In this document: positions 42,840 through 47,364 of the stretch, in pieces
How the letters are laid out: the number at the start of each line of letters is the position of its first letter
How positions within the stretch are numbered: position 1 is the stretch's first letter
Assembly: GCA_907165135.1 (NCBI GenBank)
Contig: OU015568.1
Span: 4,402,001-4,466,000 of the forward strand
DNA: 64,000 bases
Direction of reading: 5' to 3'
Source: Oikopleura dioica
Taxonomy: Eukaryota; Animalia; Chordata
The notes under the pieces: model-generated
What the model was told of the DNA's origin: nothing
Seen by the model: the letters and a program-made list of their open reading frames with translations, nothing else
Databases searched by the model: none
Program-made: the position numbers and the translations under genes

Positions 42840-43566
42840 GTGGCTAGGGAGAGAAGCGACTCAGTCCGGTTAAAAAGTTCTAATTTGAGCACTCGAGAAC
42901 AAAGTAGAAGAGAACTTCATCCCTTCATTAGGCCCTGGATTTGCTCGGCGATTATCGGAATCACTTTTATACTCGGTAAAAATGTCTACTTTTCACCAAA
43001 ATTAACAGTTTCAGCCGCTTTCTTGTGCACAGAAGCATTCAATAACGCTGGATTGATTCCGAAAAAGCCAATTTTATACGCACTCAGTGGAGTTTTCTTT
43101 CTAATTGCAATTATTGGACTGTTCTTTTCGATCCAGTTTTTAGTCAAGCACGGCGGGGTAGGTTGAAAATGAAGAGTTAATCAGCGCTTTCAAAGTCGAA
43201 TTAATCATTTTCTTTGATTTTAGGGCGATCACTTACCGTCAATCGACTCAAAAATGTCCTTGTCTTCGATTTCTAGGGCGATTTTTATCGACGAAGAGGC
43301 CAGCAAAGCATCTCAAAGAATCAAGGTCAGGCTTCTCAAAAAAGTCATTGTTCTCGAATCAAATTCAGTTCGAGGCACCGGAGGATCACATTATTCTTGA
43401 AGACAGCCAATCTTCCATGCCATCGCCATATTTTCAAATGCCCTTTCGAGAACGACTTGCGATCGAGGAGTTTATCAAGCGATCTGCGGCGGAGGATCCT
43501 TGTGTTGATAATGCGAGAACTGTTCCGAATTGTAAATTTTGCTTGAAAAACTGTAAAGAAATTTAA
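42840..43566 (+). CDS. Hypothetical small multi-pass membrane protein (exons inferred)
   Basis: Hydrophobic segments PWICSAIIGITFILG and ILYALSGVFFLIAIIGLFFSIQFLV. Downstream open exons end CKFCLKNCKEI*. Start not resolved. Confidence 0.4.
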
Positions 43567-43617
43567 TCAGGTTTTTTGTGGCTGAGTGTTTTTGCTTATT
43601 TATTCAGCAGATAAAAC

Positions 43618-45453
43618 CTATTTCTTGTTCGAAGTTGCTTGAGTGATAAAAACATAGGAGTGTCCGGAGATTTCTAGTTTTTCATCGCCAACTAGTTCTG
43701 CGTAGTCGGCAATATTGAATCGTAGCGCGCCGGGTTTGAACTGTGCTTCGATTCCGTTGATCATTACCGTTGACGATTGCAGATTCGGAGAAGTTAGATG
43801 GTACTTTGTCGCGGATTTGAAGTCCTCGAATTCCTGGAAAATTGAAGATCAGGAAGAAACAGATGAATACTTACGTCGCAATAAAACAAGATTGGCTCGT
43901 GACTGTAATTGATGACGAGGAGTGTTTTCTGGAGCTTTCCATTTATCGTTTCCGTCTCGGCGAAATATTGATGTGTCGAGTTGCCCTTATCGTTCCAAGC
44001 TTGAAGTTTTTAGTTCACAAAGCTCATCTTGTTTCCCTACCTTTATAGATTTTTCCGACCATCAGTTCTTTGAAAAGTAAGGCGCCATAAAAATCTGGAT
44101 TCACCAACATTTTCTTTGAATTAGAATCGACTTGAAGTAGTCCATAATTTCCACCAACAAAAGTTTGTCGACAAAAAGCTTTGTGGCCACTTTCGGCCAT
44201 CACCGCCATCCAATCAACGTACCAAAAGGCGGACATGAATCGGTTTGTGACGGTATTCCGGCCAGAGTTGTATGCTCCGCCGGTTTCGCCCATCCACACG
44301 CCTAAGGGCAAATTATCGAAACTGCTCGCTTGGCTGAAATTAAAGGTTAGGTTAGGTTAAGGATTTCGAGCAAACTTGGCAAGATGATAAATTTTTGAGT
44401 TAAAGTTCTCGTCCATAATTTCTTCATCAACCTTGTCACTTGACCCCGCTCCTAGCGGATAAGAATGATAAGTAAAAGCATCAAGTTGGAAGGTCGGATC
44501 TTTGATTTTCATTTTCGCGAGAAACTCCTTCACCCAAGCGATGTCAAGCGCCGTATCCACGCCAAAGACTTTCGGGCGATCAATCGACGAAAAAAACGAT
44601 TCTTTGAGCACTCGCCAGAGCTCTGCAAAAGTATCGACTCCTTCGTCAACAGTCAACTTTGCCTCGATTCCATATTGTCCATAGATTTCGTTTCCGAGTT
44701 CGAACGCAAAGATATTTTTCATGTATCCCTCTTCTATCCAATCCTCAAGCATGTGATGAAATTGTGTTGAGTTCCAGTCGCCTGTCCAGTTTGTAGAACC
44801 GGTTTGAGTTCTTCCCTCCATTGCGTTCACTCCCCAGAGTACTTTGAAGTTGACGCTGTTGACGAAATTGAAGAAGGTTTTTGCGCGACCTTTTGAGAAA
44901 CAGCCATCGCCGAAACCACTGTGTCGTCCTGGTTCGGGACTGATTGGATAGGGTTTGCTGAATGGAATCATATCATCCGGCGGATTTTAAAATGCTTACC
45001 AATGTTGCTCTGAAACTGACATATTGTAGCGAATATGATCTTGAAGCGTTCCACCAACTCGTAGAAACGCATAAGAATCCCCGAAAGCGAGCGAGCCGCT
45101 TGTCTCAGAATATCATCACCAAAATCAAGCGCATTCATTCCAGCTCCTGTCCAACTGCAATTTCCATAGTCGCATTTCGAGTCCGGCCACCAGTCAAGAT
45201 TGACGCAAACATAAGGATGCTCGAGTCCAATATTGTTCAAAACAGTACTTTTTAAATCTCAGAAATTCATATTTCCATAATTTTTCTACCTTTTATCAAT
45301 CTTTATTCGCATTTCTCTTTTGGCCGAGGCTCTTATCACATTTGCTGTAATTGTACTAAAAGCAACAATAGTAAAAACGATAAACCAGCCATGTTTTTCT
45401 ACAAGAGCCTTTGGTGAGCCACATTTTTGAATTGAAAAGGGGCTTGAATGCAT
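43618..45453 (-). CDS. Glycoside hydrolase family 79 (heparanase-like / beta-glucuronidase), multi-exon
   Basis: Motifs VCVNLDWWPDSKCDYGNCSW, FELGNE (acid/base Glu), FTYHSYPLGAG, VWMGETGGAYNSG (nucleophile Glu), FWYVDW, CRQTFVGGNYGLL, NPDFYGALLF and YHLTSPNLQSSTVMING. N-terminal hydrophobic segment WFIVFTIVAFSTITA. Confidence 0.93.
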
Positions 45454-45979
45454 TTTTGAACACATAAGATATGTTTTTTCGCGAACGGGGGAGATAGTAA
45501 AACTTGACCTATTCGAGTCTTTTGGTTATCGATATTTTTTCTTAGTTCTTTTAAATTTTCTCCCTTTGATAACGATTGAAATGCAAATTTATTAAGCAGT
45601 TATGATTTTAGTTAAGTTTGACTGAGGCTTTTTATTATTCCCTTTTTTCTGAAATTTTCCTTTTGTTCACATAAATTTCAAACGCTCCGATAGACCTAGT
45701 AAACCACCAGATCAGAAAACCTATCAAAGACGCCACCATCAATCCAAGCAAAAAGTAGCGAAATCTCTTGCTCTCAAATGCGAGGAAACAGATGCAGAGG
45801 AGGAGGTCCTCCATTTTTATACGATAATTCGTTTGAGGAACAATATTTGGGATGCTATAAAAACGCCACCGAGGGCGAGGAAAAGGTCGAACGGATTAAG
45901 TTTACCTTTTCTTAGAGAAAATTGAGTTTAAACATCAAGATTCTTGATTCAAGAAAATTGATTCTTCCGGTCATTTTCT

Positions 45980-47364
45980 ATGACTCATAAAGACATTGAC
46001 AGAGCTACTTCTGAACCTGATAAGCCCAAGCACACCGGGGTCATCCTTGGTGATAACAGAATAATTTATTATTTCCTTGAAGGGGGTCCCATAAGGGCGA
46101 GACGTTCAGAAATGGAAGACTTCGTAGAATGGGGTCGAGAATTCGGCGTCGATTTTACAAAATTTTCAATTCAAAAAATAGAGAATCAAGGCTTCGGAGT
46201 CGTGGCAAAGAAGAGCATTTCTTATGGAGAGCCGCTGATAGAAATTCCCGAAGAAATTATCATCACGCTTGATAAAGTACTGAAGGACAGAAGGATACAG
46301 GACGTTTTGCGATATGGAAAACAATTTGAAAAGGTCGATTCGATGGACATGTTTTTGCTCTTTTTGACAATCTACAGATTTGAAGAAGATTCGTTCTTTT
46401 GGAAGAAATACTTCAGAATTCTCCCGGAAGAATACGGCCTGCCGATTTTTTGGGAAGAGAAGTACAAGTCCTGTCTTCCAAAAAGCTTCCAAAAGATGCT
46501 GTCAAAAGAGCGGGCGATTTATGAGAAACGCTTGAGCTTCGCAAAAGAAATGTGCCCTGAAATCAAAGATGATGATTTCAAATGGGCCTGGAGCGCGTTT
46601 TTAACGAGAAATGTCAAGGTCTCACATGCGGAGTACCTCAAAAGAGCGGATGATTCTGCTTGGAAAAGACCTTCATGGTTGCAAGAGGGGGATTATGACG
46701 ACTCGGCGCTAGGTACTCAAGCAATTTTACGATGAAAAAGCGAGGTTTTTAGTGCCGTTTTTCGACCTGATCAACCATACGGAATCCGCAAGCGTTCAAT
46801 ATATCTACCAAAGAAGGGACGAAAAATTCAAGCTAACTGTAAAACAAGAAATTTGCGAAGGAGATCAGATTTTTATCAATTATGGAACGTATGGCTCGTT
46901 TGATAAACTGATGGATTATGGTTATGTAGAAGGTGGTATGCCGAATTTCAACGAGAGGTTTGATAAAAATTGCGCTTTGTTGAGAATTATTGTTAAGTTT
47001 TTTCGTTGAAAAAGAAGAAATTCTAGAAGTGTCGAAAAAGCTCAAGATTTCACTGCCAAATGCGTCGGAAATTGAAGACATAAAAGAGAATTCCTTTGAA
47101 ATCTTTCGTGCATCAGTCTCGCCGCAGATGGAAGAATTTCTCGAAATTCTAACGAACGAAAACGAAGAAGCAGCTGCTCAGATCAAGATAGAGCTCTTTT
47201 CGGATATCATTCAGAATATTCGGAAGAATCTTTGTAAGCGAAAAATATATTTGGCCGATTGATTTTTAGTGAATCTTGGCACGGATTTCGGCGATGAGAT
47301 TGTTTTCTGCAGAAGATTGTATAAGAAAGTGTATACGATGATAAGTGATATTTTGTACGACTGA
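45980..47364 (+). CDS. SETD4: SET-domain lysine methyltransferase of the SETD3/4/6 (Rubisco-LSMT-like) group, SETD4-like; 5' end uncertain
   Basis: Motifs GFGVVAKKSISYGEPLIEIPEEIIIT, WKKYFRILP, FKWAWSAFLTR, LVPFFDLINH and EGDQIFINYG...LMDYGY. Orthology within the group is tentative. Confidence 0.75.

Follow-up and report, generated by a model that had tools for sequence, protein, structure and literature searches.

A plant heparanase-like (DWWP-type) GH79 gene family in the appendicularian Oikopleura dioica and its possible acquisition from a eukaryotic microbe

The stretch of Oikopleura dioica DNA analysed here (64,000 nucleotides; GenBank assembly GCA_907165135.1, contig OU015568.1, positions 4,402,001 to 4,466,000; hereafter 'the window') carries on its minus strand, at 45453-43618, a gene for a glycoside hydrolase of family 79 (GH79). 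We find that this is a nuclear gene of the animal and that its predicted product is a DWWP-type GH79 enzyme, the type otherwise known as plant heparanase-like, and very probably no orthologue of heparanase (HPSE). Rather than a single acquisition in one species, it is one member of a family that has diversified in appendicularians. A transfer of this family from a eukaryotic microbe into the appendicularian lineage is slightly favoured as its origin, but is unproven. The gene had been singled out in an original prediction as a candidate for horizontal transfer with plant/algal-type signatures. The limits given there (43618-45453) coincide with the ends of the coding sequence, from the ATG at 45453 to the last base of the TAG at 43618, and the four peptides quoted there (VCVNLDWWPDSKCDYGNCSW, HSYPLGAG, WMGETGGAYNSG and CRQTFVGGNYGLL) can all be read in the translation of the minus strand. 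What had been overlooked is a frame break of one base in exon 2.

GH79 identity and subtype of the window protein

The Pfam model PF03662 (Glyco_hydro_79n, cut-off 23.1 bits) matches exon 2 (E 8.6e-14, 51.7 bits), exon 3 (E 5.8e-26, 91.7 bits) and exon 4 (E 8.9e-10, 38.5 bits), and it matches the annotated protein P0181 with an E-value of 9.3e-39 (133.7 bits). Because three separate exons and the annotated protein all give this match, a chance resemblance is excluded. An AlphaFold (AF2) model was obtained for residues 131-542, the first two barrel strands lying upstream of the frame break. The model has a predicted local distance difference test (pLDDT) score of 88.7 and a predicted TM-score (pTM) of 0.87, with alternating strands and helices followed by an all-beta C-terminus, and its 33 best fold matches in the PDB, as found with Foldseek, are all GH79 enzymes. 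The predicted architecture is thus a (beta/alpha)8 barrel with a C-terminal beta-sandwich.

Profile alignment places ELGNE of the window protein (44701-44687; E228 at 44689-44687) on ELGNE of heparanase (E225), and WMGETGG (E348 at 44287-44285, within WMGETGGAYNSG at 44296-44261) on WLGETSS (E343). Both catalytic glutamates are therefore in place, as had been predicted. In addition, GGNYGLL (Tyr395 at 44146-44144, within CRQTFVGGNYGLL at 44173-44135) aligns with GAGNYHLV of heparanase (Y391), and the N, the Y and both G residues of GGNY are invariant or almost so in 40 relatives. Judged by these alignments, the window protein is a bona fide GH79 member that retains both catalytic Glu residues and the carboxylate-binding Tyr.

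The N-terminal part of the protein holds the most distinctive feature. The peptide VCVNLDWWPDSKCDYGNCSW, encoded at 45210-45151 in exon 2, fits the pattern C-x-[TN]-[LMF]-D-W-W-P-x2-K-C-x-Y-x2-C-x-W. When the 204 residues encoded by exon 3 were scored against 1.84 billion representative proteins, 148 relatives were recovered at E<=1e-3 (best E 2.6e-34), and C.x.DWWP..KC.Y..C.W is present in almost all of the full-length members of this set, from plants to protists. The same exon 3 query, run with phmmer against the PDB, returned no heparanase, leech enzyme or other GH79 protein at E<=1.

A profile built from the appendicularian-like clade (described below) separates the subtypes by score. Plant proteins reach 331-380 bits, named algae and dinoflagellates 275-393 bits, and the group formed by Phalansterium, Ploeotia and Apiculatamorpha 225-240 bits. 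The leech hyaluronoglucuronidase (7EYO) scores 177.6 bits, human heparanase 123.7 bits and an Acidobacterium beta-glucuronidase 68 bits. The profile alignments to the leech and human enzymes start only past the DWWP motif. Moreover, the linker of proheparanase forms a long insertion when aligned to the appendicularian profile, and the window protein has a short HCKPYPISPEPGRHSGFGDGC at this place.

These comparisons bear on whether the gene could be a fast-evolving orthologue of HPSE/HPSE2 or of the leech-type hyaluronoglucuronidase, with its resemblance to plant proteins arising by convergence or as an artefact of divergence. The fold and the catalytic residues are indeed common to both, human heparanase is the top Foldseek match (TMq 0.78), and Oikopleura proteins generally evolve fast. 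Yet exon 3, which matches no heparanase or leech protein of the PDB at E<=1, retrieves DWWP-type proteins with E-values of 1e-14 to 1e-34 from a database 10,000 times as large; the scores of HPSE (124 bits) and the leech enzyme (178 bits) fall well short of the 290-393 bits of plants and algae; the cysteine-rich DWWP motif is fully conserved and has no aligned counterpart in the solved animal enzymes; and the heparanase linker is absent. We consider such orthology very improbable, and the sequence comparisons indicate that the enzyme is of the DWWP type. The original assignment to a plant heparanase-like GH79 type unlike vertebrate heparanase is borne out by the motif, the profile scores and the exon 3 matches.

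Among characterised proteins, the closest in kind are the plant GH79 enzymes (Arabidopsis AtGUS1-3 and Scutellaria baicalensis sGUS), which belong to the same Pfam family and carry the same N-terminal C.x.DWWP..KC.Y..C.W. Plant members, named 'heparanase-like protein 1/2/3' or 'glucuronidase 3' in databases, are 30-37% identical to the window protein and resemble it in the ELGNE, GETGGAYNSG and CRQT.GGNY blocks, in a length of about 520-550 residues, in a secretory N-terminus and in having no heparanase linker. The window gene differs from them in that its host is an animal, in that it belongs to a long-stemmed clade of its own outside the streptophyte clade, and in that the window paralogue has a signal anchor instead of a short signal peptide. 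The algal and protist members (Durusdinium trenchii CAK9001546, Seminavis robusta CAB9521690, Triparma, Polykrikos, Pycnococcus, Klebsormidium, Phalansterium and Ploeotia) are of the same subtype. The Durusdinium and Seminavis sequences have the top profile scores (342-393 bits) and lie in the nearest neighbour clade of the best tree; however, identities to these algal and protist members are about 30-33%, none is close, and no named lineage encloses the animal clade.

Two solved animal enzymes are more distant. The leech hyaluronoglucuronidase (EC 3.2.1.36; 7EYO), listed as a GH79 hyaluronidase (PMC12254123), is a non-heparanase animal GH79 and matches better by sequence (E 3.7e-51) than any other solved structure. 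It has both GET..YNSG and R-Q-T-..-G-Y-Y-G-L-L in common with the window protein, but it is an endo-enzyme of a blood feeder and is not detected with exon 3 alone. Human HPSE (5E8M, 5LA4) shares the fold (TMq 0.75-0.78), the pair of catalytic Glu residues and the carboxylate-binding Tyr. Its identity is 22-24%, and it differs in its excised linker of about 6 kDa and in an N-terminal strand without the DWWP or cysteine motif. HPSE is an endo-acting heparan sulfate hydrolase.

We also observed four much longer proteins (P0020, P0071, P0075 and P0150; 1,777-2,903 residues) that match positions ~86-147 of exon 3, the ELGNE segment, 5-8 times each. By sequence, these look like arrays of GH79-fragment-like units.

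Host gene, gene family and origin

Residues 131-542 of the window protein are 100% identical to the product of O. dioica OKI2018_I69 PAR.g9666.t1, a gene model on a record 17,092,476 bases long. The GC content of the gene (0.436) and that of its third codon positions (0.444) are both within the range of neighbouring open reading frames (ORFs), and sites resembling bacterial promoters and terminators are no more frequent than expected by chance. The stretch is contained in DNA runs of three studies, with two haplotypes at host-like depth, and orthologues are present in the independent Norwegian (Bergen) assembly of the species. The window gene is a nuclear host gene of O. dioica (Okinawa lineage, chromosome record PAR, g9666).

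Appendicularians eat algae, hence prey DNA may be expected in samples, and contaminating algal or protist DNA in the assembly would be a simple explanation for a gene of this type. However, the gene sits inside a 17-Mb chromosome record between host-like genes, it is interrupted by introns of 41-42 nucleotides (nt), its orthologues and its two haplotypes are found as described above, and related genes occur on contigs alongside FGF and MGAT5 genes. The several short host-style introns had already led the original prediction to argue against contamination; five GT-AG introns of 41-42 nt were found, and together with the chromosome record, the two assemblies and the runs of three studies they exclude contamination for all practical purposes. 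Two oligo-dT RNA runs labelled as the same species have no reads on the gene; this says nothing on its expression, the presence of the organism in those runs not being established.

At least two paralogue lineages are present in O. dioica, each in both the Okinawa and the Bergen assemblies. One comprises the window gene g9666 and Bergen P0184, which are 57-61% identical, and the other comprises g8640 with Bergen CBY37768 and CBY24752, which are 40% identical to the window protein. Further members were found in marine metagenomes and in Tara metatranscriptomes. The contig of P0177 and P0004 also carries an FGF gene (E 1.7e-10) and an LRRNT gene, and P0180 and P0280 adjoin an MGAT5-type GT18 gene (E 1.6e-28). 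P0178, P0007 and the P0192/P0289/P0299 group (introns of about 45-50 nt) are metagenome members as well, and some 25 more short representatives are exon fragments nearest to the appendicularian-like members. P0192 and P0289 form the deepest branch of the animal-like clade. Their locus (L004:1120-2861) is split by four introns, each about 45-50 nt long and none of them at an intron position of the window gene, and adjacent to it are a GST gene and one that resembles choline kinase. Intron-position conservation was dropped as a line of evidence, since positions vary even inside the clade. A word-index search with exon 3 gave no more than three fragments of exon size under its length filter. A metagenome scan with P0289 found nothing, and searches of the ESM Atlas with the GH79 exon and with the gene neighbouring the L004 locus gave just generic glycoside hydrolase or choline-kinase clusters without useful taxa. 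Separately, two JGI marine metagenome contigs (L012 and L024) encode proteins 95% and 99% identical to the two Bergen O. dioica GH79 paralogues, and North Atlantic-type O. dioica DNA is therefore present in those metagenomes.

Relationships were examined with an IQ-TREE analysis (LG+C20 posterior mean site frequency model, PMSF) of 66 sequences, unrooted and built without heparanase or leech sequences. The 11 appendicularian-like sequences form one clade with 100/99 support in which metagenome sequences branch between the O. dioica paralogues. These findings indicate that the family is old and has diversified within appendicularian-like animals. The sister of the animal clade in the best tree comprises 10 sequences, among them those of Durusdinium and Seminavis and several from compact picoeukaryote contigs.

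The original prediction had proposed a green or other algal/protist donor. The named members outside land plants are Klebsormidium, Pycnococcus, Triparma, Attheya, Seminavis, Durusdinium, Polykrikos, Apiculatamorpha (which we take to be rhizarian), Ploeotia (Euglenida) and Phalansterium (Amoebozoa). Given these diatom, bolidophyte, dinoflagellate, rhizarian, euglenid and amoebozoan members, the subtype is pan-eukaryotic and not specifically green. The signature read as plant or algal is therefore that of the DWWP type, as recognised, but it does not by itself point to plants or green algae. No opisthokont besides O. dioica was seen among the named relatives, in a sample of 148 representatives, about half of which have no taxon label, and of the best 120 of 1142 matches of the profile search for relatives, in which plant sequences predominated.

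Two other sources were tried and rejected. A motif scan found no relative in 185,579 prokaryote species genomes, which speaks against a bacterial donor, and a motif scan of IMG/VR likewise found no relative that would suggest a giant virus as vector.

We hypothesize that the family entered the appendicularian lineage once, long ago, from a eukaryotic microbe (an alga or a protist), and that its host introns would have been acquired afterwards. A single gain is more parsimonious than a dozen or more losses, and the appendicularian proteins are more similar to the algal members, both of which favour transfer. Precedent exists in that the cellulose synthase gene CesA and GH6-1 are known horizontal acquisitions of tunicates (PMC10334666, PMC3390340), foreign carbohydrate-active genes that became fixed and later had host introns. 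These cases differ in having a bacterial source and in being common to all tunicates, whereas the apparent range of the GH79 family is the appendicularians and no prokaryotic relative was found by motif scan. Several results weigh against transfer. Support for the sister relation is only 90/94; approximately unbiased (AU) tests do not reject a tree in which the animal clade joins the streptophyte/green group (p 0.294), nor one in which it joins the Phalansterium/Ploeotia/Apiculatamorpha group (p 0.337); and the tree is unrooted, with about half of the relatives lacking a taxon label. The animal clade stands on a long stem (0.54) and is nested in no named lineage. The status of transfer candidate given to the gene thus holds as far as stable integration into the host is concerned, but the animal clade does not nest within a donor lineage.

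The same results keep alive a vertical origin, in which the last eukaryotic common ancestor already possessed a DWWP-type GH79, a paralogue of the heparanase lineage, that was kept, among animals, only or almost only in appendicularians. The subtype is present in Archaeplastida, stramenopiles, alveolates, Rhizaria, Euglenida and Amoebozoa, and its presence in Amoebozoa, in particular, may mean that it dates to the last eukaryotic common ancestor; the AU result for the amoebozoan-containing group, the long stem outside any named lineage and the incomplete labelling, behind which other opisthokonts may hide, all fit this account. It would, however, need a dozen or more independent losses in fungi, unicellular holozoans and all other animal phyla, it has no other opisthokont among the named matches to show for it, and the amoebozoan-containing group scores lower (225-240 bits) than algae and plants (290-393 bits). 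We regard an ancient origin of this kind as a serious contender that is nonetheless rather unlikely. Transfer from a eukaryotic microbe is slightly preferred, at about an even chance, and is not proven.

Gene structure and the frame break in exon 2

The GH79 gene (45453-43618) consists of six exons and five GT-AG introns of 42, 42, 42, 41 and 41 nt, and the joined exons make 542 codons plus a stop. Exon 1 (45290-45453) has its start codon at 45453, a second candidate start being an in-frame ATG at 45465, and encodes the hydrophobic segment WFIVFTIVAFSTITANVI (45387-45334). This segment (residues 23-40) is the sole strongly hydrophobic one near the N-terminus, with a Kyte-Doolittle mean of 1.84 over 19 residues, and reads as a signal anchor. 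Exon 1 is further supported by the peptide across its junction with exon 2, IKIDK/STVLNNIGLEHPYVC, which is matched by relatives across the splice site. Beyond intron 1 (45248-45289, 42 nt), exon 2 (45000-45247) carries the DWWP..KC.Y..C.W motif, the LRVGG strand (45064-45050) and the frame break. Intron 2 (44958-44999, 42 nt) precedes exon 3 (44376-44957), which encodes the core of the (beta/alpha)8 barrel with ELGNE and HSYPLGAG (44467-44444). Exon 4 (44041-44333), with the nucleophile and Tyr395, lies between intron 3 (44334-44375, 42 nt) and intron 4 (44000-44040, 41 nt). The C-terminal beta-sandwich begins in exon 5 (43875-43999) and, after intron 5 (43834-43874, 41 nt), is completed by exon 6 (43618-43833), which is 100% identical to P0181 and ends with the stop codon TAG at 43620-43618. 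An AATAAA polyadenylation-type signal lies on the same strand at 43599-43604, 14 nt past the stop codon, and may serve the gene. The protein has six N-glycosylation sequons.

The reading frame of exon 2 shifts by one base within a homopolymer at 45079-45082, a run of four C on the plus strand (four G on the coding strand) that is one base short for the frame. In the DNA run that covers the locus best (X1), a contig over this site has an extra C inserted behind 45078, giving five C where the window has four, and a second X1 contig stops at 45082 with the loose letters CGAAAGCGA behind it, which likewise amount to a fifth C. The five-base reading, ...AARSLSG-D-SYAFLRVGGTLQDH, agrees with the Bergen orthologue SLSGNSFGLLRVGG (...AAKSLSGNSFGLLRVGGTLQDH). 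Furthermore, 33 of the 39 listed coding differences between the window and the second X1 haplotype are synonymous, and these include 10 of the 11 differences situated before the break, as read in the upstream frame. This excess of synonymous differences on either side of the break shows that both sides are under constraint at the protein level. The break is most likely an error of the assembly rather than a mutation.

If the break were real, this copy would be a recent pseudogene or an N-terminally truncated gene without the anchor and the first barrel strands, much like the public model Oidioi.mRNA.OKI2018_I69.PAR.g9666.t1, which is 412 amino acids long and begins at Met131 of the 542-codon gene. 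The window itself, with four bases in the run, and the start of the public annotation at Met131 are in keeping with this, and a low-depth contig of another run (X2) lacks the insertion, that contig ending 8 nt past the homopolymer. In addition, the correction of the frame rests on Logan contigs of one run (X1). On the other hand, the X1 contigs that span the run have five bases, no further stop or frameshift interrupts the 542 codons, the upstream differences are nearly all synonymous changes at third positions in the upstream frame, and a protein starting at Met131 would be without two barrel strands and any targeting signal. We therefore think it improbable that the break is a true feature of the gene. 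With an assembly error at 45079-45082, the one-base deficit would explain why the g9666 model, truncated at its N-terminus, has neither the signal anchor nor the DWWP motif, and the full-length protein with its targeting signal, not the truncated g9666 product, would be the proper one to express and assay.

The second haplotype in X1 differs from the window at many sites over 43550-45550, with up to 20 per 238 bases. The GH79 locus is thus highly heterozygous, with clear purifying selection. One X1 contig (depth 156) connects 45267 to 45415 and skips 147 bases; the region of intron 1 and exon 1 may be replaced or deleted in the second haplotype.

Three ORFs flank the gene. An ORF on the plus strand at 43348-43566 is convergent with the GH79 gene and ends 52 nt from its stop codon, so the two 3' ends nearly touch or overlap, as is typical of a very compact genome. 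Upstream on the same strand as the GH79 gene, about 170-180 nt before its start, a 59-residue ORF (45635-45814) with one hydrophobic segment might represent the upstream gene of an operon, unless it is spurious. A 251-residue ORF on the plus strand (45980-46735) is a divergent neighbour gene with a weak SET-domain match (E 0.002) that falls under the Pfam cut-off.

Proposed enzymatic role and significance

From these features we infer that the gene is functional and that its product is a retaining GH79 glycoside hydrolase, either secreted or anchored in the membrane. The hydrophobic segment near the N-terminus would direct the protein into the secretory pathway, and the enzyme would act there, at the cell surface or in the gut lumen. 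By analogy with solved GH79 structures, E228 of ELGNE is the putative acid/base and E348 of GETGG the putative nucleophile, and Tyr395 of GGNY, together with the Gly-Gly that follows the nucleophile, may hold the carboxylate of a beta-linked glucuronic acid (GlcA) in the -1 subsite. Terminal beta-GlcA might then be trimmed from glycans, which could be algal polysaccharides of the diet in the gut or those of the matrix that the animal itself secretes. Trimming of this kind is, by the same analogy, most likely the activity of the enzyme, in preference to endo-cleavage of heparan sulfate or hyaluronan, since the characterised plant members (AtGUS2 and the Scutellaria glucuronidase) are exo-acting and the heparanase linker is absent. 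That the nearest solved sequence, the leech hyaluronidase, is an endo-enzyme weighs against exo-action.

GH79 enzymes and their mechanism are known, and the Oikopleura proteins are already in public databases as uncharacterised products. In our literature search we found no paper that joins Oikopleura with heparanase or GH79 and nothing relevant on GH79 transfer in tunicates or invertebrates, and the house proteome paper mentions no glycosidase. The presence and expansion of the family in an animal lineage, and the truncation of the public gene model, appear to be unreported.

These findings can be joined into a more specific, tentative proposal, to which we give somewhat less than an even chance. 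An appendicularian ancestor may have taken a GH79 gene from microbial prey, which could have been diatom-, dinoflagellate- or picoeukaryote-like. The gene would subsequently have gained introns and an anchor, and its at least three present paralogues would digest glucuronate-bearing algal polysaccharides or remodel the house.

Tunicates, with their cellulose synthase gene, are the textbook case of an animal group that owes part of its make-up to a carbohydrate-active gene of foreign origin. Few marine grazers are more abundant than appendicularians, and the houses that they discard take much carbon to depth. If the family was acquired by transfer, appendicularians would have a second, eukaryote-derived glycosidase family through a rare alga- or protist-to-animal transfer, and glucuronate-containing glycans would be indicated as a substrate class in digestion or house turnover. 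Should the gene have come from microbial prey, the feeding biology of a major marine grazer would have been shaped by a transfer from a eukaryote to an animal. In the other case, that of an ancient relic, animals would have started out with two GH79 lineages, one of which would have disappeared from almost all of them.

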